Of a DNA stretch of 64,000 nucleotides, positions 2,743 through 23,999 are shown piece after piece; the first letter of the stretch is position 1; each line of letters opens with the position of its first letter. The DNA comes from Trichoplax adhaerens (Eukaryota > Animalia > Placozoa): positions 8,955,070-9,019,069 of the forward strand of contig NW_002060943.1 in assembly GCF_000150275.1 (NCBI RefSeq). Reading direction: 5' to 3'. Below the pieces are notes generated by a model, which saw nothing but the letters and a program-made list of their open reading frames with translations, had not been told where the DNA came from and ran no database searches. Both the position numbers and the translations under genes were made by a program.

Positions 2743-5085
2743 GATTTTTTTATTAAATAATGGAAATGATCGACTATAAATTCTTATATTAAGTTCTGTT
2801 ATTGCCCGACATTAGATCGGTCAGGATATTTAATTCATGATACAATTTCAGCTGAACATTTATCTTTATTATAATTTCAGCAATCTACATTTTATTTTAG
2901 CCACAGGTTGTTTATACAGCAGTAACGTTCTCCCTCAACTTTTATTTTAAATTATAGAATAAGATAGGTACACTACAGTATATTGTATATTTGCTTAGCC
3001 TTTGAATAAAGGACGGCTTTTTGAATTAACCCTATTATTAGGAATAGTATCATTTTGTGGGTTTTAATAATCATTCATTTCTAAGTTACATATTATCTTA
3101 TGTAAATATATTTGCTTGCAATTAGATTTATAGATTGCACTTACCTTTAGAACAGTAATGATGTATCTATAAAGATGTTAACCCTCCAAATAAGCTCTAT
3201 AATAGCATCCATTTCCATCGATTAATTAAAATAGTAGTGGGAATACGCAATCTTTTTAATCTAGAAACTATTAACTCGCGAACGAATGCTACCGTTGATC
3301 GTCAGTTGCAGTTCTCACACTATTACTACTCGTCTTTCAATTTATAGTCCAGTAGCATTGACAAAATTTATTATATACTAGAATACCGGTCGGAAATTAC
3401 AGGAATATATCACGTTTTGATCGCAAATGTAGTATCAGAACTAATGGTATTATTTGTCTTTTATTATATCGAATAAAAGTCTTACCAATACAATAATGAC
3501 TGTATTTGAAATATTAAATCATAAATGATCTAAACACAAGCATAAATTTCTTAGTTTGAAGATTCCTTGTTTCACGGTATGCACTGTACTTTATTTTATT
3601 AATATCGAGTAAAATTTCCAATGTGTACTTAAAATAGATCATCTTGGAGGCAATTCGATTCGTATCTTAATAATCGAGTATTTAGATTTCTGACAGCCCC
3701 TAAAATGTCAACAATTGCCTCTAATTAAGGCTAATTTATTTAATTAAATGAACGTTTAACCTTTCCGCTCAAGTGAACGGCCAGAATCTAAAATGTAATA
3801 TCAATGACTGTATAGCGTTGGCAAAGCATCCAATCGCTTCATTGATACCATCTCAAACAAATTATTCTAAAAGCCTTTAACCTAAGAGATATTTAGTAGT
3901 TGATCTTGCATTGAGTACGATATCATAGCTATCCCTCAAGATCATCATACAACGTCATCAAAATAGGATTTTCATGATCAGTAAATTGGCAAATACAAGA
4001 TGTTTCGTTTTACTAATATTATTTTACGTATATTATATAAAGAACGAGCTACGAGTATGCGAGTTTAAAAATTCCTGGATAAGGTTAACTGTCTTGTCGC
4101 AACTCAACCCGAAACAGAATTTTAAGGCATAAATTTTGATAGACCAAGTAAAATAAACATTTTAATGGCCTAAAATTTTTTCAATTTTGTTAACTTTCAT
4201 ATTATACAGTTAGAAACGATAGAGTAGCAATTTTAAGTTTTCTAGTTTTATCATTATACTGTAAGGATTCTTTAAAATCTACCGTAAGAACTTACTTTAA
4301 TAAAATTTAATGAATTGAAACACTTATTTCCGTTTAAGTATGTATTAAACTACAAAGAGATACGAAACAAACAGCCCTTCTTTCTCCTTGAACGAATGTA
4401 TTTATATACGAATCCCTCACAGTACAATAACAGATACACCATATGCTAACCGACTATTATCAACTTGTATATTTTAGAGTCTCAAGATTCAGTTTCTTCT
4501 ACTGTTTAAAGTTCAGTGACCTGAATTATCCTTTTTTTAAATATTTATGATAGCTTAACGTTCAGTATGACAATAATTAAAACCAAATAATTTTTGAAAC
4601 AGTAGTCGCAATCACATTCCTTTCGTGTTCGCTTACATATTGTTTTCCACTTAAACAACTCTATGCAATTTGATATGCCAAAAATTTTTGTGTACAATTA
4701 TAAGGTATACAAGTGAATCAGTTGGCCGCATGGTAACAACTTCGTTTATTGTCTACGTTAAAATCAACATCGTTACTGATGCAATACAGATATACTAATA
4801 ACTATACTTTAATCAAGTTAGATATTGTTCTTCGTATAATATATTAGAATCGACAACTATAGATAATTATCCATTACGTCACGATATCCAATAGTAATAT
4901 TGAACAATAAAATCCAATATCCAGTGGTGTTAAAACAATTTTCAAAGAGATGGTATAATTTTCTATCCATTATACTTGGTACTAGCTATTGCTATAACGA
5001 ATTTACTCATAGCTTTAGTTTTTTAACTAAGTTACTCGATGTTTTAGAATTTCTCTCAAATACTAAATTACAGAAAGCAAGCAGA

Positions 5086-5286
5086 ATGCCTCGTTCAAGC
5101 GCAGCTTATGTCGTCGTGGATAATATCGCTGATTTTCAGCCAAAATCTGTTTCACGTCGTGAATCAACGGTCCAATTCTCGCCAAATCACACCAAAATGC
5201 ATTTAATTATCGCGTATATTACTGTTGCTTTGACAGTTTCCGTGGTCGTTGGGGTTTTAATTTATCTTTTCCAAAACAAAAAGTAA
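5086..5286 (+). CDS. 66-aa single-pass membrane microprotein, paralog A (HLxxAY family)
   Basis: ATG at 5086 (the ORF-track start at 4900 is TTG). MPRSSAAYVVVDNIADFQPKSVSRRESTVQFSPNHTKMHLIIAYITVALTVSVVVGVLIYLFQNKK. The C-terminal TM helix aligns without gaps to the ORFs at 10155 and 12286. Confidence 0.75.
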   Translation: MPRSSAAYVVVDNIADFQPKSVSRRESTVQFSPNHTKMHLIIAYITVALTVSVVVGVLIYLFQNKK

Positions 5287-8051
5287 TATTAACAAGATTA
5301 CATAGCAAAAATATCAATTCGATTGGTAAGTCTATCATTTAAGCCTTTACTGAACAGAGAATATGGCTGATTATTCATCTCTACTAAGATATCAGTTTCT
5401 GGATAAAAATATAAGTATTTACTTTCAAGTTTAATGAAAACTTGAAAGCAAACTTAGACAATACGAACGGAAAAAATTGATGTCTTATCTTTTCGGAAAC
5501 GTTTATTCGTAGCATTTGATTTACTTGGATTGCTTATTGTCTACCGATTTTATTTGGCCATATGAATTTTAACCTTTAACTAAACAATTGACATCTGGTG
5601 TGTATTAATGCACATGCTTGACTATTAAATACTGTACCATAGCACTAGTTAAGATGTGTAGGTCAGGATCGAGAATTTTAAATAAAAATGAAAAATGTTA
5701 ATGAAAACCATCTTGATATCTACACACGACAAAGGCGTTAAGAATGGTGTAGATGATTCACATGATTATAAAATAGAAGTTCAGAAAGTCGCCTGATTTC
5801 GAAGAATAAATACATTGACGATATTATAATCGTCGAGTTGACAGTATGCGAATTAGATTTCTTTAACAGCAGACAGACATTGGATCCGAAGTTTAAATTG
5901 ATAAAATCAAATTTATTGGAAGCCTGAAATACTCCGTCGTATCAATCTCAAACTGTGAAGGTTCCATTCTAGTACACAGTATAAGAAAAATGCAATCATT
6001 TAAAGGAAATTAATTTATTTCATTTGGTGATAATGTAATCAGGAATGATATCCTTCATAAATATAATAACATTTTAAGATGGTATATTAATTAGGTAATT
6101 TTGGTTTTGAAATCAAAATATATGATCATGTAAGATATGAAGGTTAATTCGCATTGTGATCTCAACTTTATCTAAATGTGAGTTTTTATTTGTCAATTAT
6201 AAAATCAGACATGGAACTTATATCGGTATCGTAATTCTTTTAAGGTGTAAACTTGATAAGAGAGTAACTTAATAAAGCTTCTGTATTACAGCTTATCAGG
6301 ACGTTCCATATTAAATTTAACTCTGTAGTCTTGAGATAACTTAATAAAATAAGTTTTAACCCGTAATTGTTATTATCATTTTTTTGTTTTCTGATATCTG
6401 TACACAAAGTTTACTAATAAAAAACGGTAATTCTTGTTATAGTACTATAATAAATAAATAGTATGCTTCCATATAAAGCTCTCTGTTATATAAAAATAAG
6501 ATCTAGATTTTTAAAAGCAAGGATATTGGCATGAAACTAATATTGAATTATCATTTAATTTAATAATGATGCGATTTTGTGTATCTTTCATTTACTGTAA
6601 AATGAAAGTAAAGCTTTTTAAATACTATTTGTGTTACAATACAAATAAATGCTACTTGCATTTAATGTGTGCAATTTTAAAATACTCCATCAAAGGTAGC
6701 AATTAGCGTTCAACTTACGAATAGCTTCGGTTATATTGCTATTCTTTAAGATATTTGATTCTAATGGAAGACGAACTCTGACAAAGATAGTAACAGATTG
6801 GCAATCCTCCTTATATAATATTGTGAATATAAGTGGACAACTCAGAGTAGAAATATTTTATTGTATATCTGAGAAATGTTGTCGAATATTCTAATTACAA
6901 ATTATTGATCAATTTCATTGCTAGTCAGAATAAATCGATAGAGATTGATAACCTAAACGGATTTTAGACATAAATTTCTTCTTGCAATTAGTGAAACAAT
7001 CTCCACCGCTATTTGTTATTGTACTGATGTAGATGAGATAATTACTTTAACACTTTGTAAATTTTATAAATAATAGAAACCATTATAATGCTCTTGTTTC
7101 AGGTCATCACACCTCTCGTTCAATATAAGTTCTTATTGCCAGAAAAGTATGTTTCGAAGGTTATATATATACTGATTACAAAACGGTATTGCTATTTCTT
7201 GGCTGTAGAATATTAGTGTTGTCGTATAGCATTTATTGCATTTAACTTGTAAACCTAATGTACTCGTATATGGGCTGTAATAGTCTCAGAATATTTTACA
7301 TGCTCCTTTCTAGTTGGTTCAATATACCATTTTTAGTGTAAATTATAGTGACGATATTACGTGGAAAAAATCAAGAAGCTCCGATCTCGCCCTACAACGT
7401 GATATAATATCCTCGTACAATATAATACAAGCGTAAATCATCTCTAAATTCTATCTACTTAATAATCTCAATCTTCAAAAGTCTTTGACTTCATAATAAA
7501 TTAGAATTTGGCCACTTTTATTCTCGTCAGCTATATTATTGGTACTTCGTAAATGCATATTAAGTACAATTTACCCCTCTAACTATTAGTTTACCTGGCA
7601 TGAAGCATTCATTTCAACCTGATATACAGTTTGATCAAGAAGTAGTATTACTAAGCTGCTTTTACTTTATTCTGATCCGATCGAAAAAGATTGATGCGGA
7701 TTATAATTGCTTGAAAATAAGTCTATCATAACGCTTTATTAATTACGAATCGTATAACAGTATTGCACCGGCCATTGCAAGTGATTTAATAACTTTTTAA
7801 AGTTTCACTCTATTAAAGGATACATTCAATTCGTGCATCCTATCATGGAGTTAAAAAGACTTCAAAGATTTAGAAAGTTTTTTACCATATAGTAGTGGGT
7901 AAAATTTTAAATTACTGAATAATGCAGTCTCATACATTCAATAGTGCATTACTATACTGTACCGTGTAAATGCAGTCATAGATTAGTGGGTGTACTGCAT
8001 CATCTACCATAGTAGTCCATGATCCAAAGTACAATTCAGTAGAGTGATAAC

Positions 8052-8178
8052 CGTGATACTTTGCGTACTTGTTCACTAGCCGAACAAAGTAGAATCTTAC
8101 TACACTAATTAATACCAGACAGTCTAGACCTACATCTCGTGATACTTTGCTTACTTATTTACTGACAGTAAGTAGAAT
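8052..8178 (+). repeat. Short imperfect direct repeat (~42 bp, two copies)
   Basis: CGTGATACTTTGCGTACTTGTTCACT...AAGTAGAAT (8052-8095) versus CGTGATACTTTGCTTACTTATTTACT...AAGTAGAAT (8138-8178). Confidence 0.7.
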
Positions 8179-10154
8179 ATTAAATAATTAATGAATTAAG
8201 GTTAGGAAGTAAAGTTAATCAACTCTATTATGCAATTGTATCCTATGCTTATGGTCCGTGAGTTGCATGCTAGTCTACATGTACTACTGTAGACTAAGTA
8301 GGATAACAATCAATCACGATATGCAGATGATTGAGGATCAGGATAAAATAATTATTGCAAATACACACTACGAGATCCCGAGATAGCTACGTAACATGTA
8401 TATGTATTACAGCAAAAGCAATACTATTTAACAGTCTTGAATTTGCACTACCTATCTGCAACTACAGTGCTTCATACTATATATGACATGGCTAAAACCC
8501 GATCTCGGTTAATATGCATTCAACCTGCTAAAGCCCGAATTGAAGGCAAAAGTATTACATCTTCGGGCTTGTGCCGGTTATTATCTACTTTACTTTAGTG
8601 TAGTTTACATGCTTAGTGGTACTGCACATATCACACTCGTTTTAGTGTACAGTACAGCATAGTAGATAACTTATTCTCATCCATCAAGGTACTGTGAAAG
8701 AAGAAGGCTTAATCTCCATGCTATTGCATCCCATTTTCCATTGCTTTTCATTAGAGACCCTTAGGGTCTGTACTTTTCATAATATGCAATAGTCTAATCT
8801 TGTAGCACGCCTTCATCACCCCTCGAATAAAGCCTCTTTTAAAGACATATCCTCTCTTGCTATTCCTTTTCCCTTAGTCCCCTCACTTGCTTACTACCCT
8901 CGAATTATAATCATGGTTACTCCTGACCTGCGTGGAGTGCTTCTTTTACTTTTTGGAGCTAGATATCTGATAGAACTCGTTACATCACTACATACACGTA
9001 TGTCTTGTAAATATCATACATTCTGCAGTAATAAAATCAGTTCTCTAGCAAGCTTAGTGAACTCAATAACGTTGTGTTTCCACTCTTAGTCGTTAACGTT
9101 AACACGAGGAACTTTGATACACTCCTACTAGTAAGCTTACTGAAAAGTCTCTTTTATTTAGGATTTACTGCATTTAAATAGTATAGCTGTAATGGCGTAT
9201 TATACCCTTATCTTAGTAATTCATTACCTTATCTTATGCTAACACGTTAGGTGCAGTACAACAAGTCACTGTATTCTTACATACATAACAAATAATACTA
9301 CAGTAATAAAGGTTATGGACAAAAGGTGGTAAAGCTAGTACAGGATTGCAGAGGCTACTTGTATAGCTCACTTTTATCGAAGTCAGATAGCCACACAAGT
9401 TATTATCCCCATCGTCTGGCTATTCCAATAGATTACTAATGCACAAAGAATTGTATACTGCTGAAACCGACCGTACATGTACCTGTGACTGATGATTTGT
9501 ATTACAAATTTCAAAGAGATAAAATAACTCAATACTACAGTAAAAATGAATAGAAATATCAAGAACCAGTTGATTAAAATTGCGATGATCTGTAGACGTA
9601 AAATTTAAGCCAAAATTGAGAATAAATGCCTTGAAAGTTTATAGATCTAATTAAAGGCAATATTATAGCTGAACGGCTTGCAACCGATCTAGAAAGCTTG
9701 CTACACCCCTTTACTCCATAGTGTATGGCAATCATAGACTACTAGATGCATTTAGTAATCCATGGTAGCGGGGTAGGAGAGACAGAGATGGAGAAAGACA
9801 ATGAAGTCGCTATAGCAACAGTGACATCTTTGTCAGATTGCATAATTTAGCAACTCCGAACGATATTGTCCTAATCGTTGTATCTTCTATAATGTATTGC
9901 TCAGTGATTACTGAACAATTGCTTTTTTTAATCAATTCTGGCCACAGTGTAGTGTAGAGCAATTGAAGTCGAATCCTACCACAGCGTCCGGATTAGAGAT
10001 CAAAGTCTTAACATCTTTGAATAGAGAACACGTATCATCAACATTGGCCACTTGTCAAGACTAAAAGTCTTAATTTTCTTCATCATTTGTAGATGAATGA
10101 TCCAAGCTCTGTTCAGTAGTGTTTTTTTCTCTTCTACAAATATCAATATCTTAA

Positions 10155-10280
10155 ATGAAGAACGAACGCATTTATACTAAACAATCTCATACTCACTTGA
10201 TTGTGGCCTACATCATTGTGGCTGTTTTGATTTGTATCATGATAGGCTTACTGGCTAGATTATTTGCTAGACCAGTATAA
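10155..10280 (+). CDS. 41-aa single-pass membrane microprotein, paralog B (HLxxAY family); possibly N-terminally truncated or decaying
   Basis: Below the ORF-track cutoff; read by hand: MKNERIYTKQSHTHLIVAYIIVAVLICIMIGLLARLFARPV*. Shares H,L,A,Y,V,A,G,L,L positions with paralogs A and C, using synonymous codons. Confidence 0.65.
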   Translation: MKNERIYTKQSHTHLIVAYIIVAVLICIMIGLLARLFARPV

Positions 10281-12285
10281 TATCATGAAACAACTGCTAT
10301 GGAGCAAATATAAAATTGGTCATAAAATTTTTAAGTTAGCATGGATTAGATACGAATGGAGCTACCCATAAAAAGATTAAGATGTAAAACAATTGGCTAT
10401 TATTAAGCACCAATTATTTGAGTTTGATATACCGTGGCTGAACTCCTATTAATTTTTTAAAGATTATTTGTACGATCACCTTCGGCACTAAAATGTCGAT
10501 ATTAATGGATATCGATCTAAAGTGGCAATATGATTCTTATTATGGATATAAGCACGCCTTTAAGTGCGTACCGTATCTCTCTAATTTTTCTATCAAAGAA
10601 TTTACTCGAGGCAGATCAATCTTACCAAGGTTTTTTAACGGAAATGATGACAAATTGATTTTTCGAAAGAAGTCGAAAGAATAGTTATTTTTCCGAGCCT
10701 AAATAATTGTTATGTTTATTAACAGATAATAGTAGTATGTTTATTGTCGGTATATGGTAGTTAACGGTAGTGAAGATAAAATTATCATTTAATTAACAGA
10801 AAGAACGCAGTAAGATAACTTGTACAAATTTTTAGGAACACATCAAAGAACTTTCTACGTATGTAAGCCTAACGATGCCCTTAAAAGCTGGATGATTTTT
10901 TAATCTCCACTATATACTTACAGTGTTAATGTGGAAGTACGCTTTGAACTTGAACTGAATGCAGGTATAAGTACATAAGAGAATTGTAGTGAGAACAAGA
11001 GTAAGTGTATATAATAGAATTGATTAAATCTGGAAGCTCACAGCTAAGTCTAAATGCATCTTAGGATTCTATAAGACTGTTTTGTTAGACCAACAGCAAT
11101 TGTAAAACATCTACTTAGCTCCTAATTTAAAGAAGTTAAACTTTAGTCTGTAACTTTATACCTACGCGAAAGCTTCTTAGCTTAGGTAAATTTTTACCAA
11201 CTCTGTTTAAATAATTAGGTGAACTATATCGTGTTTTAGTTAAATTAATAAAGAGCATTTCTATAGAATTGCTTTAGAAGTTATAATAAGAAAATTTGAA
11301 ATTGCTTTATTGCAGCAATGTGTCTAAATAAATCCTCTAGTTTAATAGCCCCGAGTCTTTTAAATAAGTACTCGTTAAGGTGATTGATAATCGTATACAT
11401 AAATTTAAGTTCATATAATGTCAAATAGACTCATTTTGTTGTCATTTCTTGAGCCATCATAAATCGTTCCAAAATGAGTCGACAATTCTATATCTTTCAC
11501 TGCTATAACTATAAAATCTGCGTTTACGTTGGTCTAAAATAAGCACATATCTATTATGCCATGTCAAAAATAGGATGCAGACGATACTTAGCATTGTAGC
11601 ACTGTAGCTTGTACTCTGAATATTCAGTATAATATAACCAACTGTATTCGATGTTATTTACATAATTACATTTAATTTTAAGATATGCAGTTAACCAAAG
11701 AATTTTATGAGTATTTAAGTTCCTGTCAAATATTTCACAAGTAGCCTATTAACTTGATTCTACTGTATAATAGCACATTGTAAATATTCTCAATTCTTAA
11801 TAGATCTTGCAATGAAATATTCTCACCTTAGGCATTAACACTAGCTTAATTTTTTATTTGATAAGTTGTGACTTTGACTTCATACATTTTAATTAACTTT
11901 GCTGATCTCATAGAAATTGTAGTGCCTCTAGCTGTGTAACCCGGTAGCTAGTGTTCTCTCTTTATGCAATAAATAAGTAAGTCGTAAGACTAAGAATTTT
12001 TATCAAAGACTAACCAATAGCATCAGAAGTCAATTGTTTTGACTAATGATGCGTGTATCAAATCTCCTATTGAGTGAATAAATAATCACTGCTGCCGATT
12101 GGATAAAGTTATGCTACGGTGTCTATCAAGGATTCATATTAACTATAATATTTTCATAATCATTCCCTATTTTTTAAGTCCCTGACTGCCAGAATTTTCC
12201 CGTTTCTATCACAAAAAGAAGGAAAAAAGAATTAAAGTTTTTCAGCTAACAATTAAAAACTGGGACGACGTTTCTTTGGAACAAA

Positions 12286-12498
12286 ATGTCTTCAATTCAG
12301 TATCAGAATATAACTAGTGAAGATTTCATTCCTGCTGCAACTGTAAAAATTACCAAGCGTTACAGACGTAGTAGAAGAAGACCAATGGTAAAGAATGAGG
12401 TGCAAGTCCATTTAGTTGTAGCGTATTTAATAGTAGCGCTGTTTGTCATTGCGATGATTGGATTATTGGCGTATCTGTATCGAGAACAGCCGCAATAG
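12286..12498 (+). CDS. 70-aa single-pass membrane microprotein, paralog C (HLxxAY family)
   Basis: MSSIQYQNITSEDFIPAATVKITKRYRRSRRRPMVKNEVQVHLVVAYLIVALFVIAMIGLLAYLYREQPQ*. Start context aaaATG; basic stretch followed by the shared TM helix. Confidence 0.75.
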   Translation: MSSIQYQNITSEDFIPAATVKITKRYRRSRRRPMVKNEVQVHLVVAYLIVALFVIAMIGLLAYLYREQPQ

Positions 12499-14556
12499 CA
12501 TTTAGCTTCAATAAGAATCGTATACTAAACTGGGTGATGTAGTAATAGTTAATTAATATAACCGAATGAATCATTCCACAACATCAGTGCTTATCTTCTT
12601 TACGGTTATATTGCAGATATAATTGCAATAAGACTTCTCTCAATAATAGTAACCTGGATATAGTAACACCATAGCTTTCTTTTCCAATTTCTATTTCGAT
12701 GGATTGTAATTGAAAATATGATAACTAGAGCATCCGAAACGTCATACTTATACTAATATATTTATATTTATCAAACATAAACTGCAATGGAAGGTTTAAC
12801 TCCTAATTTCCATCCAAAGCTATCTTTCTTACAATTTCATATCAATCTAAATATAAAGCACCGTAATGTCTCTTACAACATTTTCAAGATTATCCGATTA
12901 TTACAGCAAATAATTAGATAAAAAATAGTTGCCTAATACTTTATACTTATTAATTACATATTACAAATAGACTATATTTTGAGGCACTTCATTCTTATTT
13001 CAATCAGAACTTTTTTCTGATAAGAATAAACGATTAGTGCAATCGTGCTGACATTGTTTTAAGTGCGATCAGATCTATCAATAAAAGATTGCGGGATGAT
13101 CACTTTGCAATCCATCCCAATTGAATGCAGTTTATAATGCTACCATTATTACGACTGTATTACTTTGTATATGGATTATGTCAACATGTTTACTTTGTCT
13201 TCGTTTTCATTTCGATGGCCAAATATTAGAAATACATTGAATTACAAAAAGTTTTTGATTATGTATCAAATTAACCTGCCTAGCTTTAATTTTAACGAAT
13301 ATTCTTTTATCTTGATATTGAAATATAATATAAATCTTTGTAGCAACATTTTAATAGTGATAAGATTATGAGTGTATTCTATCTAAAACTGAATTTTAAT
13401 AGAAATATTTCAAAGGAACTGCATCATTCATTTATCGACTGTACGCAGAATTTAATAATGTAGCAACACACGAACACTTGAAAGATTATATTAACGCTCG
13501 CCAAGATTTTATTGATAACCTGTGAGAACTAAATCATTACAGTAAAACGGTCAAATAGTTATAGCAGACTTTCACAACCCTTAATTATATTGATAAACTA
13601 ATCCTAATTTTAGCTAATGTGCTTTAATATGTAATACGCTTTCTTTTATGGTTATGTGGTAGATTTTTAACTAATGTATCGGAATAAATTTCGAGATTAT
13701 TATGCAAATGTGATAAACTGCCAGCTTTTAATAAATCACTTAATGATTTTTTAAAAATGACTGATTAACATTACCGCACTGCACAACTTCATTACCTAAC
13801 AATCATAAATGAAGGGTTAGCAGATATGTTCGTAAATTGTTATTTAGTTCAATAAGGGACATCTCTACGCTTATATCTGTCGACTATAGAGTCCGAAACT
13901 AGTTCGTACCTGTTTCAGAAATGTTCAACCATTGTTATATTCAGCATTAACGGTTAACAGTGAAGTTCTTTAACGCGCAGTATAAGTCGTACGGCGTATA
14001 CTATACATTTTTCAGTGGCTATACCCTACTCCCACAGGATTATGAAGTAAAAATTACAAGTACATACAGTAAGCGAAGTATAACAAGCGTGGGCTCGCCA
14101 GATATTTATTTTTCGCTACATAATATCGCTATTACCGTCAGTCCTAAGTTAGTCCTAATTCTTACTGCATCATAACTACAGATTTGCTTAACTACACGTA
14201 GAACTCTTATTAAAAGCCAATTCACTATCGCGAGCTAATTTCAAAGAACGTAGCTCACTCTAATAATGGTACGCAGCTTGCTATACAGCACTATATTTGT
14301 TTAAATACTGAGGTGTGCTCATGTAATTTCAATAAGACAGTGAGATTGTAAAATCAAACTTGATGATGGTCATTATTACGAATTTACGATACAGTAGATA
14401 ATTTTAGTGCTACCAAGTTTATCGAAACAAGTTTTTTTCATGTGCGAGTACGCCAGGGAGAAAATATTACAGCCTATACCAGTACCAGTAATCTAGTATA
14501 CCGTTAAGTGGCACCTTGAACAAAGTCTTGTTTAATAGCGGATAGAAATAGCTAAG

Positions 14557-17270: not shown

Positions 17271-20200
17271 ATGGTATCCCAAACTAAGTATCACCAGTTA
17301 CCTAAGGAAGATGAAAGCAAAGAGAACGAAGGAGAAATGGGCGAACAGAAGCAAGGTCAAGTGACTATTAACTATTTTTGTGGTCGTCGTCAAGTACCAC
17401 GGAAAGACTTCTACTTGATCATGGTTACTTTAATCGTCGTCTCAATGATTCTACTTGCGCTGTTTATTACCGCCGCTGCTCGACATCATAAATCTCAAAC
17501 GTCATCGCAAAAGCACGGACATTCAAGAGTCACTCCATCACCGACTTTGCCTTTTCCCTATAAAAGTTTTCGATTACCGGCGTACATTCGTCCAAACCAT
17601 TATTTAATTGACTTGCGCCCGAACTATGATCAGCTAACAACTGCTGGTAACGTTTCAATCAACGTTACCAGTAGTAAAAAATCGAATTTTATTATTTTAC
17701 ACAAGAAACATGTCAACATTCTTGACGTTAAAGTCTCAGAATTAAATAGCAAGAAAGATATCAAAGTCATAAAAACTGATGAATATCACAAATATAATTT
17801 CTACTACATCAAGTTAGAACACTACTTACAACCTAATAAAGGCTATCTTATTCACGTAAGATTTACAAGTCAAATAAAGACTAAAGTACTTCATGGATTG
17901 TATCGCAGTCATTACCGAGCAGCAAGCGGAATGACCAGGTTATATATCTCTTATTAAATTATATTTTTTAATTGACGTATGTTATTGAAGTATGTTAATA
18001 CTAAATGACTAAGATTGGAGTATAGCGTTTTATTAATTTGATTGAACTTCAGTTTCTTCAGTGCAAATAGTGTAGCGAAAAATATAGCTCTATTATAGCA
18101 TTACTGTTAATATGCGATTTATGTTAACTATTTTGCTCCTGCTAGCAGAAAATAACAATTAAAGTTTCAAATTGTTATATTCTACAATAAATTACTGTAC
18201 CGTAGACCGTAGATAAATATAATCATTCCAATGTAAAGAATACTGATTTCATCTTTTAAGTTCGGGTAAATTTCCTATCTCCCACGACTACTTCAAGTTC
18301 AAACTACCGATCATTTGTTTATTAATTTTACAGTATAATGACCACACTCGTTTCGGCAGTGATAATTGTTTGATTATTCTCAAGCTATGATTAAATTCTG
18401 TACCGTCCATACTCCCGTAAATTGTTAAGCATATCTTCATTATGATGGATTATATTTATGATGTAAAAATGGTTATATATATTTATCTATGTTATAATTA
18501 CAATTGCTCATTATAAATCGTTATATCACATTAAATCATTATAAGACTCACACTAGATAGACATTATTAGAGGGGAAACCTGTAAGAAAAGCCTAAAACG
18601 GTAGGTGATTTACTTTACTAATAAGTATTACCTTTTTCTGTTACAGATATTTGTACAGTACCCACTTGGAAGCCACTCACGCTCGAGAAATATTTCCTTG
18701 TTTTGACGAACCAGCTATGAAAGCAATTTTCACACTGACAATCACTTCACCTCCTGGCTATACAGCTATTTCCAACAGTGAAATTCATAAGAAGAAAGTT
18801 TTACAGAATAATTATACATTAAATGAATTTCATCCTACTCCTCCAATGAGCACTTATTTAGTTGCCTTGGTAGTATCTGATTTTAAAAACCTTGAAGGAA
18901 GAACTATAAATAACGTTCGCGTAAGTCAATCTCAATTTTACCATCATATCCGTTTTCCTGTATCACATAATTATTGTTTAAATTTAGGTTAGAACATGGG
19001 CAAATCCGCTTATGTACAAGTATACGAACTATTCGTTACATGTAACAATGAAGGTCATCCCTTTCTATGGAAAAACGTTCGGGGTAGCCTATCCTTTGCC
19101 TAAGATGGGTATATATGGTTTACTTTGATAATTTTACACGTATTAATTAGCTCATTTACGTCTATTTCGGTATTAAAGTATATGGATTTATATGTTTCTT
19201 CTTATATAATATAATGTAAAGACTACTAATCAAATCTTATTTGAATTAGATCTGGTTGCTATACCGGAATTTGCTGCTGGAGCTATGGAAAACTGGGGAT
19301 TAATCTTATACAGGGAAACATCAATGATATATAATAAATGGGTTAATACTTTGCGTACAAAGCAGTGGGTAACTGTTGTAGTTGCACATGAATTAGCACA
19401 TCAGGTATAGTACAACCTATTTTCGTATTTATATTAGATGAACCTAAATTCATTTCTTTAGGTAGGGTATATTATAATTTTGCTTAATACAATCTAATTA
19501 GATCACTATTTTCTGGCTTTATAGTTATCTTAAATTGTATTGTACTAAGTGTTCTTTCTGCTTAAGTTGTATTACTGTATTAATATATATTATTTATTTT
19601 CTACTGAATATCTTTCTTGATTTATTATACTAGTGGTTTGGAAACTTAGTAACGATGAAATGGTGGAGTGATATTTGGCTTAATGAAGGTTTTGCAGCCT
19701 TTATGGAACATGTTGGAACAAATCATGTTGCCCCTGAATTTCAAATGGTAGAATAATATTTACGATGAATTTTGTTAATTTGCTGTTTGGTCATATATAA
19801 TTATGGACTCTTAGGACAATAATTGTTATTTATCTATCTCATGTTCTAACTAGTATGTTGTATACATAGATGAAGCAGTTTCTATTGCGAAATTTTCGTC
19901 GGGCACAGTATGCTGATAGTCTTCCTACGATACATCCTCTTGTATCTACGGCAACTAATAGCGATCAGATCGAGTCCTTATTTGACAGTATTTCCTATAA
20001 AAAGGTAGTCAAGATAAACTACTTTGTCGAAGAATTACAAACTGCTATTTCATAGTATAATTCTACAATATTATGCTGTGTAGTCATGCTATCTATTGGT
20101 TAATGTAGGGAAGTTGCCTTATAAGAATGGTGCGGGATTATTTAGGCATACCAAACTTTAATCAAGGAATTCGCCATTATTTATCTACGTATAAGTATAA

Positions 20201-23200
20201 GAATGCAGATCATAATAACCTATGGCAGGCTCTGCAATGGGCAAGTAAAATTTGGTTGATTTTATTTTTATGATGAAGGGATTAGGTACACCTGTTTACC
20301 ATCTGGATATATACGTACAACATTTACTAAGTTGAGGCTTTTAAAATAATAGGCTAGCCATGGTAAAGTTAATATCTCTTCGATGATGAGTACTTGGGCC
20401 TTGCAACCTGGCTATCCAGTAGTAACTCTTGGAAGTCATAATAACAATGGTACAGCAACTATTAGTCAGCAAAGATTTCTGTCTGTTCGAAAATCGAAAT
20501 CTGGGGATTACGGGTCGATAACTGCCTCGTGAGTAGATGCGGTCACTATTTTTATAATATTCAAAGAAGTCTTTCAAGAATTAGGCAGCAACATAGCATT
20601 AGCTTAAAGTTATTACGAAGATACAGTCGGAAATGCAAATTGTTTATATATCTACGTGCTATAACTTTCTATCTATTTCGATAAGCGATACTAGCGATGT
20701 TTGTACTTCGATCTTGGCACGTGAGATTTAAAAATAAATTAGATATTAAATTCGCTAATATTAATATTATCTTATCATTTTAACCAATACCAGGTCCCTT
20801 TGGCATATTCCCATATCATTTCAGACAAAAAATAACCGGACTGGTAAATTCATGTTGTTGAAAAGGGCCGGTATGTTTCAAGATAACTAAAATACATCAA
20901 TGCATTATATATATCAATTAATGATCGGTATCAGCCGGATAGAATTTCGTAGCTATTAACTGCAAATCATTAAATAAATATAAATTGTAACTTGGTAGCT
21001 AGTACTACCTTTTAGAATGTTTTCATATATATTTGATCAAAGCAGTGAATAGCCAATTTGTACCATGTGCATAATTGCTAGGCGCTATCAACCGAGTATT
21101 CGTGAATACTAGTAGTATTTTCTAATTTGTTTTAATAAATCATAAATGTTTATTTCAGATATTTTTCCGTGGAAAAATACTGATGGATGGATAAAATTGA
21201 ACTCTAACCAAATCGGCTATTTTACTGTTAATTATAACATCCAAAATTGGAATTCGCTGACAGATCAGTTAAAGAAAGATTTCTTGGTAATACATTGAAA
21301 TTGAATAAATACAATAGCTTTATGATAGTAAAATAGACCATCAAACTGTTCCATCTATTTAAAATCTAGGACCAAAAATAAATACATTTGCGATTATAAG
21401 CTAATACATAATAGTTTTATATTTATACTCGTACGATAGTATGATGATTTATTTGGGAAAAGGTATTCCACTTGCGTTATTATATTCTTAAAAATTGAAC
21501 TATAACGCCAACTAAATCGGTATTAAGCGAAAATTATTGAATTTACGAACGAAACTAGACAATTATCGCTATTACCATAAAAATTGTCGGAATGTTTATA
21601 AGTTATTCATTAATTCAGTATGATGACCAAATTATTGCGACTTTTTGATATTACAGGTGTTCAATGACATAGATCGCTATCAGCTCTTAGGCGACACTTA
21701 CATGTTAGCTAGGTATGTGAGAACATATTGCGGATATTGTAAGATATGCAATGCATTAACCAAACCGGGAAACTGTTATCAAATAGGCCTGGCCTGCTAA
21801 CCATAAAAGTCTTCCTTAATATGACAACCTACCTATTTAAAGAAAAAAATTATCTTCCCCTATACGCCGGTTTATATAGTTTAAGCGTAATCAAGCAGGC
21901 GATGTCATATAACAAAATTATCCACCAAAAATTCGAGGTAACTGTTTAATGATCAAATGTTAAATAGTTTGCTTTCCTATAAATTTTTAAAACCATGACG
22001 TAATTATTAAAAAGATCCAGAAAATAAACTACAGTGTATAGACTGCCATTATTAATAATCGATTATTGATTTCTAATTACCATTTATGGTTAGTAGTCAA
22101 ATCCTTATTATTGATCTATTATCGTAATAACCAAATCTAGGCATATATCTATCGTTTGATACGACCTCAGATTCAGAGATTAGGCTGGAAACATCAAGCT
22201 TCGTATTTGCAGAGGTAACTAGATTTTATTACTTGTCTTGTTTATCATTATAATTATTAGCGTTCTCTTATTGATATCTACAACTTCATGAAGGACTGCA
22301 GTTTACTATCACTTTTTTCATCTATAGTTTTCACGGACTTGCATTTTGATTAATTACTTTATAATCCATCTAGTAAATTACAACATCTAATTTTGGTCTA
22401 TGGCGTTCACTACAACGATAGTACAATAAAGTCATATAGTTTATCAGCTTATCATCAGTGGGTTTATAATAATACCAGGTAAGACTTAATAATTGCGTAT
22501 CGCTTGTAGTTTTTAAATTGAATCAATAATCCAGAATAGGTGATAAAGCTATTGAAGTAGTTTAATCTCAGTAATTCTAAGGATTTATGAATACAGTTAT
22601 TATATTGTAATTGAAAAATTTTATATAAGATAATTTTATATTAGATAACTTAGCGCGATTGTTTCGTATCATAGACTGCCTACGAAATTTCGTAGCCTTA
22701 TCCTATCGGTAGCTATGAAATATGGTGGGCAACCGGCAGAAAAAGTTATGATGGATAAATATTTACATACAAGTTCATCATCTATGAAACGTTTATACTT
22801 TGCAATAATGGCTACATCAAAAGATCCTACATTTCTAAACAAGTATGGAATATAGCTACATAATTAAATAAGCAAATAAGTTTGTGAAATGAACTGAAAA
22901 ATGTCTTGTAATAGCAGAAATTAGAAATCTATTAAATGTTAAAATTTTAATCGATCAGAGCAACAGTGCTTCTATACTTTTATATTATCTATTTTTGCTT
23001 AAGATTTCAATCTTTTCTTGGCTTTTTAGGCTATTGGTCATGACTTTGGATCCCAGTAAAGTAAGAATTGAAGAAACTGTAACGTATATGAGTTCTGTTG
23101 CTAGGAATTCTGTCGGATCTAAACTCTGCTGGGAATTCTATAAGAAGCATTTTCAAATTATTCATAAAAGGTATGCAATTATTATTACTGATAATAATTA

Positions 23201-23999
23201 TTGGGTAAATGACCTGAATAGATGAGTATCCCTAGTGATATATAAATGATGAGTATTGACGTCATTAAATTTATATATTAATATAATAAAACACGATGTA
23301 CTATTAATCTATTCATTTAAAACTGGAAGCGGTTATAGTAGTATTTTCTTTCTTGTTATAATCCTTAATATGTGTTGATAAGCGTATATAATTTGTTTAA
23401 TAAAGCACGATCGATCAAAGTTAGAGAGCTATTTATTATATATTGGAATGACTATCAAAGTATTAAAAAATATTTTCTACGTGACATTGATTTACAGGTA
23501 TAATTCAGAATCCTTTTCGTTATCTCACTTGATGAATTCTCTTACTTCCCGATTTAATACTGAAGCCCAGTACAAAGAGGTATCTAAATAGCAATTTTCC
23601 ATTATTTAATACTCGCACGTATGATATCCTAAAACTTAGTTCTTTAACAAGCTAATGTACTGGATGTTGCAGTATATTCGAATGCACAATATGATTAACA
23701 TTGTACATTAAGTATTTTTAAACGATATAATGACGTTTAACGCTTACTACCGTACTATTAAACAGAGCTTAATATAGAATGTAGAAAAGTAAAATTTCAG
23801 AAATAAGGATATTTATTATTTATATCTATCTTATAAAATCAATAATCATTAGGTAAAGGACTTTTATCGTGTGCATAATAATGTCGGCGTGGCAAAATCT
23901 ACAATTCCAATTATCCTATCGAAAATCCGAGCTAGAATTGATTGGAAGATATTAAATGAGGCTGATGTAATACAGTGGGCAAACAAACATTTAACTTAA
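17271..23999 (+). CDS. Type II membrane M1 zinc aminopeptidase (APN/APA/ERAP/TRHDE-like), multi-exon, apparently catalytically intact
   Basis: N-terminal cytosolic tail plus TM anchor; [11 protein letters not shown]; FPCFDEP; [10 protein letters not shown]; GAMENWG (~19279); HELAHQ/WFGNLVT...WLNEGFA; FDSISYKKG (catalytic Tyr); last exon 23853-23999 ends NKHLT-TAA. Confidence 0.95.

Follow-up and report, generated by a model that had tools for sequence, protein, structure and literature searches.

Positions 5,086 to 12,498 of a 64,000-nucleotide stretch of the Trichoplax adhaerens genome (assembly GCF_000150275.1, contig NW_002060943.1, positions 8,955,070 to 9,019,069 of the forward strand; hereafter the window) contain three open reading frames (ORFs), designated c1, c2 and c3, that form a well-supported new and seemingly lineage-restricted family of tail-anchored microprotein genes; they belong to a known type of gene and are not a new kind of system. 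On the comparative evidence described below, the three ORFs are genuine, complete protein-coding genes that have been kept in at least two to three placozoan lineages. As to what these orphan, tandem genes with single coding exons do, we modestly favor the reading in which their products would serve larger membrane proteins as accessory or regulatory subunits within the membrane.

The original prediction, made from the letters of the window, placed three same-strand ORFs for proteins of 66, 41 and 70 residues in this region, and their coordinates and strand are as it described (Table 1); neighboring copies are separated by 2–5 kb. The last 28–29 residues of c1, c2 and c3 align without gaps as a hydrophobic helix of the form HLxxAYxxVA...G.L..L, in which positions 1, 2, 5, 6, 9, 10, 18, 20 and 23 are H, L, A, Y, V, A, G, L and L in all three copies; the nine invariant residues claimed earlier thus hold for the copies in the window, although A10 is V in one copy-1 orthologue. 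From the His that begins the segment to the stop, we also count the predicted 28 (c1), 28 (c2) and 29 (c3) residues. The invariant residues are encoded by different synonymous codons, as had been noted (cat/cac/cat, tta/ttg/tta, gcg/gcc/gcg and tat/tac/tat in c1/c2/c3), and the little resemblance reported for the flanking DNA is borne out, with likeness between the copies limited to the helix-coding part and the remainder unalignable. The proposed paralogy is confirmed both by pairwise BLASTP (E = 6e-9 for c1/c3 and 2e-9 for c2/c3) and by a six-frame hidden Markov model (HMM) search of the whole genome (105,631,681 bases in 1,414 contigs), which identifies only the three loci c1, c2 and c3, each with E ~1e-19. 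Outside the helix, c1 and c3 share a weak N-terminal likeness (M-(x)-SS-x2-Y-x2-[VI], [DE]-F-x-P and a basic SRR cluster).

Table 1. Positions of the three ORFs, their orthologues and the conserved upstream blocks (window coordinates unless a contig is named; CDS, coding sequence).
Feature	Position	Strand	Description
c1 (copy 1)	5086..5286	+	complete 66-codon CDS including stop, 66 aa
c2 (copy 2)	10155..10280	+	complete 41-codon CDS including stop, 41 aa
c3 (copy 3)	12286..12498	+	complete 70-codon CDS including stop, 70 aa
c1 orthologue	L004:400-597 and L009:371-568		intact ORF, 65 aa, 85% identical
c2 orthologue	L004:4390-4509		intact ORF, 39 aa
c3 orthologue	L004:6558-6773		intact ATG-to-stop ORF
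c1 upstream block	4875..4950	+	136-211 nt before ATG; TACGTCAC, CCAAT x2; ~90% identical to L004, intervening sequence diverged
c2 upstream block 1	9787..9846	+	309-368 nt before ATG; 79% identical to L004:4047-4106
c2 upstream block 2	9959..9975	+	short conserved block, GCAATTGAAGTCGAATC
c3 upstream block	12013..12105	+	181-273 nt before ATG; CCAAT, CAATTG, inverted CCAAT; kept in window, L004, L006-L008

Orthologues were found in other lineages, both as predicted proteins and on contigs from metagenome assemblies in ENA and from the Logan assemblies of three runs. A protein search with c3 identified P0001 (87% identical) and P0002 (83%), both of 71 aa and each from a different further lineage; with c1, the search identified P0003, the protein of the copy-1 orthologue in Table 1. 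In lineage A, an 8-kb contig (L004) is syntenic with the window and contains all three copies in the same order and orientation, each intact from ATG to stop; lineage B (contigs L006–L008) carries the c3 orthologue. From the synteny and orthology at the locus, we count both lineages as presumably placozoan. When the window is compared with L004 by sensitive blastn, the alignment is nearly confined to the ORFs and to a single short block 5' of each ORF; the two genomes are therefore deeply diverged. Since each paralogue has its own orthologue, the triplication is older than the split of this genome from the two diverged relatives.

We calculated non-synonymous (dN) and synonymous (dS) divergence by the method of Nei and Gojobori. 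Between the window and lineage A, dN/dS is 0.105 for c1 (dN 0.096, dS 0.91) and 0.037 for c3 (dN 0.061, dS 1.66); for c2, dN is 0.111 and dS is saturated, so the ratio is not computable; and for the three copies pooled, dN/dS is 0.057 (dN 0.085, dS 1.48). For c3, the ratio is 0.040 between the window and lineage B (dN 0.085, dS 2.13) and 0.130 between lineages A and B (dN 0.051, dS 0.39). The pooled differences between the window and lineage A comprise 32 non-synonymous and 76 synonymous changes (Fisher p = 2e-35), and the mismatches fall on codon positions 1, 2 and 3 in the ratio 22:9:77 (chi-square p = 2e-16); in c2 alone, this ratio is 8:2:20. These comparative signatures unambiguously indicate translation under purifying selection, also for the 41-codon c2. 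The purifying selection on a peptide that the original prediction proposed is thus upheld by dN/dS values of 0.04–0.13, far from 1, by the third-position bias and by one-to-one orthologues in a diverged relative. With at most 100 codons, cross-species conservation, a coding signature, and starts and stops that are intact in two to three lineages, all three have the attributes by which small ORFs (smORFs) are recognized as genes.

Two readings would deny the ORFs this status. Short ORFs in AT-rich DNA may be chance or decaying ORFs without function; to this we give next to no credence, given dN/dS of 0.04–0.13 at saturated dS, the strong third-position bias, and the starts and near-identical stops kept in two to three lineages. 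It is also highly improbable that the ORFs are terminal exons (transmembrane helix plus tail) of larger tandem-duplicated genes, or that a single gene uses them as alternative last exons, as might be suspected in a eukaryotic genome with short exons, where protein searches limited by length might overlook long gene models. An in-frame stop lies 0–15 codons 5' of the ATG in 6/7 sequences, the exception being c1 in the window. In c2, an in-frame TAA directly abuts the ATG in both species (window and L004). In c3, a site that resembles a splice acceptor (pyrimidine tract and CAG) lies ~40 nt upstream of the ATG and is kept in three lineages, but in the window an in-frame TAA (12247-12249) immediately follows it, before the ATG; this site would mark at most the end of an intron in the 5'-untranslated region. 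In the window, the frame of c1 runs on without a stop for 73 codons before the ATG, which might suggest a longer protein; however, this stretch is unconserved, contains insertions/deletions of 8 and 9 nt, not all of them triplet-sized, and in lineage A meets a stop after 10 codons. In all copies, the onset of conservation coincides with the ATG, that is, the start codons are kept and the sequence upstream has diverged; at the other end, the stop positions agree between species within 0–2 codons, and the downstream sequence is unconserved. In addition, a profile search without restriction on length (described below) found no longer protein that contains the segment; since its only matches were P0001 and P0003, no public gene model embeds the segment in a longer protein. 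The upstream stops, the conservation bounded by the ATGs and this search largely refute the reading as exons. As a separate observation, a perfect 5' splice-donor-like string (G|GTAAGT) is located 40 nt past the stop of c1 (5320-5330); it is not kept in L004 and is probably coincidental.

Each ORF is preceded by its own conserved non-coding block, located 140–370 nt upstream (Table 1). From their positions and conservation, these blocks may belong to three separate transcription units, as promoters, non-coding first exons or both.

The family is apparently an orphan. We searched public predicted proteins (cut-off, E <= 0.001) with a profile of seven sequences (the three copies and their orthologues); among 1.84 billion representatives of any length, only P0001 and P0003 were matched. 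In word-indexed protein searches, c3 and c1 matched close orthologues alone and c2 yielded no candidate, an exact-sequence look-up of assemblies for c1 and c3 had nothing on record, and JGI metagenome contigs contained no relative. In Pfam, the seven sequences gave, at E <= 10, only sub-threshold noise driven by the transmembrane helix, with the phospholamban and sarcolipin models absent; a profile search of the PDB at E <= 10 matched only FlhB and a transmembrane peptide of IGF1R, and no PLN or SLN chain; and the best scores in the ESM Atlas (0.77–0.78) are under the meaningful level. No strong match to an already described family was therefore obtained in Pfam, the PDB, the ESM Atlas or the 1.84 billion proteins. 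The Pfam model PF15012 (DUF4519) matched two c3 orthologues only, with 16.4–16.5 bits, which is under its gathering cut-off of 27 and no better than spurious matches such as m04gp34like and AMA-1; conversely, the DUF4519 model had no match in the Trichoplax genome, and our literature search found no paper that mentions DUF4519. DUF4519 may be the C4orf3/ALN family, a possibility to which we give no weight. A literature search on placozoan micropeptides or regulins turned up nothing relevant. The searches agree with the earlier claim that the genes are unannotated; no protein from this genome was found in the protein collections. By these searches of public predicted proteins at E <= 0.001, the family is apparently restricted to placozoans, with the caveat that short helices lose detectability fast.

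The three proteins share a predicted layout. In c1, an N-terminal part of ~38 residues (with SS-x2-YxxV, DFxP and SRREST) is followed by a transmembrane (TM) helix from about H39 and the tail QNKK; in c2, only 13 residues (MKNERIYTKQSHT) precede the TM helix, which is followed by the tail RLFARPV; and in c3, an N-terminal part with YQNI, EDFIP and the basic KRYRRSRRRP is followed by a TM helix from about H42 and the tail REQPQ. Each protein has a single hydrophobic segment (mean Kyte–Doolittle hydropathy over 19 residues, 2.66 for c1 and 3.22 for c2; range, 2.66–3.22), and the 19-residue window of highest hydropathy stops 5–9 residues short of the C-terminus in 7/7 sequences. AlphaFold2, run for c3 on the alignment of the seven sequences, predicts a helix from residue 34 to 65 of 70 with a predicted local distance difference test score (pLDDT) > 90, a short low-confidence helix from 17 to 27 and a disordered N-terminus. 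As judged directly from the sequences, each protein starts with polar or charged residues (MPRSSAAYVVVDN..., MSSIQYQNITSEDF... and MKNERIYTKQ...) and has neither a signal peptide nor a second hydrophobic stretch. The predicted architecture (one C-terminal helix, a tail of 4–8 residues and no signal peptide) is thus textbook tail-anchored, in agreement with the original prediction; the short C-terminal tail that it described is also present, but its length is 4–8 rather than 4–6 residues. The net charge of c3 is ~+5 before the helix and ~0 after it, so by the positive-inside rule its N-terminus would be cytosolic; in c1 and c2, the charges are balanced across the helix.

A helix so near the C-terminus is unable to engage the signal recognition particle co-translationally; insertion would be post-translational because the helix is still within the ribosome at the end of translation. 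High hydrophobicity favors the route to the endoplasmic reticulum (ER) by guided entry of tail-anchored proteins (GET), and the helices of c1–c3 share the high hydrophobicity expected of GET clients directed to the ER. Well-known tail-anchored proteins of a general kind (Sec61beta, RAMP4, cytochrome b5 and the SNAREs) likewise have a single C-terminal helix, no signal peptide and a short lumenal tail; however, none of these is matched by the family profile, and they are single-copy and pan-eukaryotic, in contrast to the lineage-restricted tandem triplet described here.

Within the helix, H1, L2, A5, Y6, V9, G18, L20 and L23 are invariant in 7/7 sequences, A10 is nearly so, and positions 11–15 are free to vary. 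The original prediction proposed a one-sided intramembrane binding surface; the conservation moment at 100 degrees exceeds that of 96% of shuffles (p = 0.04), which gives the proposal weak support, but by eye the conserved positions form two stripes (H1/L2/A5/V9/L20/L23 and Y6/A10/x14/G18) together with a variable middle. The second stripe has a small-xxx-small-like pattern in c1 and c2 (A10-x3-(S/C)-x3-G18); in c3, I, M or V takes the middle position. Between species, conservation is higher in the cytosolic parts of c1 and c3 than in the middle of the helix; by alignment count, the identity between orthologues is 92% in the cytosolic part and 77% in the helix plus tail of c1, and 90% and 79%, respectively, for c3. 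The c1 motif SRRESTVQFSP and the c3 motif FIPAATVKITKRYRRSRRRPMVKN are identical across lineages.

Because no family, structure or Atlas cluster was matched, our view of function draws on architecture and precedent. In the explanation that we modestly favor, three tandem genes, each independently started and with one coding exon apiece, would encode proteins that are inserted post-translationally, most likely into the ER via the GET or ER membrane protein complex (EMC) routes. Their shared module would be the helix, in which a His marks the cytosolic entrance, AY follows after one turn and V/A...G forms a stripe of small residues; we read it as a module for helix–helix contact because polar and small residues are frozen across otherwise unlike paralogues, and it may pack against the TM helices of a larger membrane protein or against those of the other copies. 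The paralogue-specific cytosolic parts, which are basic and phosphorylatable (SRRES-T in c1 and RYRRSRRRP in c3), would tune or localize the interaction; regulated or localized action is suggested because these parts are strongly conserved, differ between paralogues and carry basic Ser/Thr motifs. In this scheme, the topology, the insertion route, the membrane, the binding partner and the regulation are what we infer.

Several observations weigh against this explanation. The signal for conservation of one face of the helix is weak (p = 0.04). The charge balance of c1 and c2 is ambiguous as to topology, and the 41-residue c2 could be oriented with its N-terminus out; since c2 has almost no cytosolic part, regulation through the N-terminus cannot apply to it. 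The conserved His and Tyr could instead serve oligomerization, cofactor binding or pH sensing.

The helix might, alternatively, be a passive anchor that only tethers cytosolic linear motifs to the membrane of an organelle, so that c1 and c3 would be small trafficking or tethering adaptors. The higher conservation of the cytosolic parts than of the helix plus tail speaks for this reading; in addition, YVVV/YIVV and YQNI match the YxxPhi sorting signal in 5/5 long sequences, RRSRRR is like the Arg-based (RxR) ER retention signals known in general, and the acidic-F-x-P motif may be added to these. However, passive anchoring leaves unexplained both the invariant His, AY, V and G.L..L in paralogues that are otherwise unlike and the selection on the 41-residue c2, which lacks those motifs, and we consider it rather unlikely. 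By analogy with cytochrome b559, in which two single-pass subunits contain a His-liganded cofactor, the stripe of small residues and the His might instead drive homo- or hetero-oligomers among the three paralogues, which would enclose a small pore or bind a cofactor through the His. The small-xxx-small pattern of c1 and c2 and the one invariant His per helix would suit such self-assembly, and PLN and SLN oligomerize too (PMC8396278); but the middle position of the pattern is not small in c3, no polar residues would line a pore, and the case is one of analogy, so we regard self-assembly as very unlikely.

A more specific alternative is suggested by the regulins (PLN, SLN, MLN, ELN, ALN and DWORF), tail-anchored single-pass microproteins known ‘from insects to humans’ that bind the M2/M6/M9 groove of the Ca-ATPase SERCA (PMC8396278); phosphorylation of their cytosolic part (RRxS in PLN and ALN) relieves inhibition (PMC8396278, PMC11588527). 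Accordingly worded for Trichoplax, c1–c3 would bind in the TM groove of a P-type ATPase, be it the placozoan SERCA or another one, and inhibit or tune it, and phosphorylation of RRES-T in c1 would relieve the effect. On this reading, which we judge distinctly unlikely to hold, they would be functional and perhaps also evolutionary counterparts of PLN and ALN in a non-bilaterian animal. As tail-anchored single-pass proteins of <100 aa, c1–c3 have the build of regulins, and the layout is close to that of ALN, which has 66 aa with a disordered cytosolic part (1–42) and a TM helix at 43–65 (PMC8396278): c1 has 66 aa with its helix from ~39–40, and c3 has 70 aa with its helix from ~42–43. As motifs, the RRxS-type SRRES-T of c1 is identical in the orthologue and c3 has a Ser within RYRRSRRRP; c2 has none. 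In regulins, the cytosolic third of the helix must contain a polar residue (PMC8396278), which in PLN is Asn34, in contact with Thr805 of SERCA; c1–c3 have no Asn in the helix, but an invariant His, which might or might not be equivalent to Asn34, is found at its entrance, with an invariant Tyr at +5. Like SLN and MLN (PMC8396278), the proteins have an aromatic Y/F close to the lumenal end, the genome contains a SERCA-type gene, and the c3 orthologues have the sub-threshold match to DUF4519 (16.5 bits). Against these points, no sequence homology to any regulin was found, with Pfam and the PDB silent on PLN and SLN at E <= 10; the match to DUF4519 falls short of the 27-bit cut-off and is level with spurious matches; and an RRxS motif and a C-terminal helix are features of low information.

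Comparison with individual regulins gives a similar picture. ALN (C4orf3), the ubiquitous inhibitor of SERCA2b, shares with c1 and c3 its size, the tail-anchored layout and a small ORF, and has an RRxS-type cytosolic phosphosite to which the motif of c1 may correspond, but has no significant similarity to the family, and its helix has an Asp at the equivalent of Asn34 in contrast to the His at the entrance and the Tyr five residues in. PLN and SLN are also tail-anchored and single-pass; RRAS16-T17 of PLN and RRES-T of c1 are located at a similar distance before the helix, and a helix–linker–helix is predicted by AlphaFold2 for c3, with low confidence for the first helix. SLN needs its short aromatic lumenal tail, RSYQY, and the tails here are YLFQNKK, RLFARPV and YLYREQPQ. 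However, the LFxNF-type motif, Asn34/Asn11 and the Leu/Ile zipper of PLN and SLN are absent from c1–c3, and their Pfam models give no match. Sarcolamban of Drosophila (SclA and SclB) provides an invertebrate precedent for single-pass smORF peptides from clustered paralogues that were long unannotated owing to their size. The sarcolamban ORFs, of ~28–29 aa each, are located on one shared transcript; in contrast, c1–c3 each have their own upstream block, are spaced by 2–5 kb and have no sequence similarity to them.

The SERCA-type Ca-ATPase gene of this genome (L016; G000:C1406:2887500-2897400, + strand) has many short exons and encodes the M6 calcium-site motif VTDGFPATALGFNPPD, in which the placozoan protein has Phe where rabbit SERCA1a has Leu.

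Gene finders routinely overlook microproteins of the membrane, and those that have been studied regulate pumps, channels and the fusion machinery with high potency. The present family is an apparently unannotated example of this type from an animal that ranks among the simplest. Were the reading as regulators of SERCA or another P-type pump true, phospho-regulated control of pumps by micropeptides would either predate Bilateria or have arisen independently in an animal without muscles and nerves; were the partner another protein, the family would still exemplify lineage-restricted microprotein innovation. The analysis also illustrates that comparative evidence alone is able to validate a gene of 41 codons. 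Three anciently duplicated members, their one-to-one orthologues and an invariant His/Tyr motif provide concrete targets for placozoan biologists.

The spacer between the copies is gene-free as far as it was examined, as originally described: apart from the short upstream blocks, it contains two weak conserved blocks and one repeat, and an Rfam search gave no match. The weak blocks are located in the c1–c2 spacer (5546-5607 and 7009-7099) and have 68–70% identity to L004 (E = 0.004 and 6e-4). The repeat (9070-9291) is a SINE- or MITE-like (short interspersed or miniature inverted-repeat element) interspersed sequence of ~222 bp with at least 40 copies in the genome, on many contigs and with 80–100% identity; it is located between c1 and c2, ~500 nt upstream of the conserved c2 block. 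In the related lineage, the c1–c2 spacer contains a 142-bp direct duplication, 95% identical (L004 ~3478-3749; L009 3449-3720). Apart from c1, c3 and an ORF at 13960-14175, no ORF in the first ~17 kb of the window is longer than 70 aa. Further downstream, the first large gene that is plainly recognizable after the triplet is represented by long ORF pieces at 17271-23225 (+ strand) and encodes an M1-type (aminopeptidase N-like) peptidase with an N-terminal signal-anchor.

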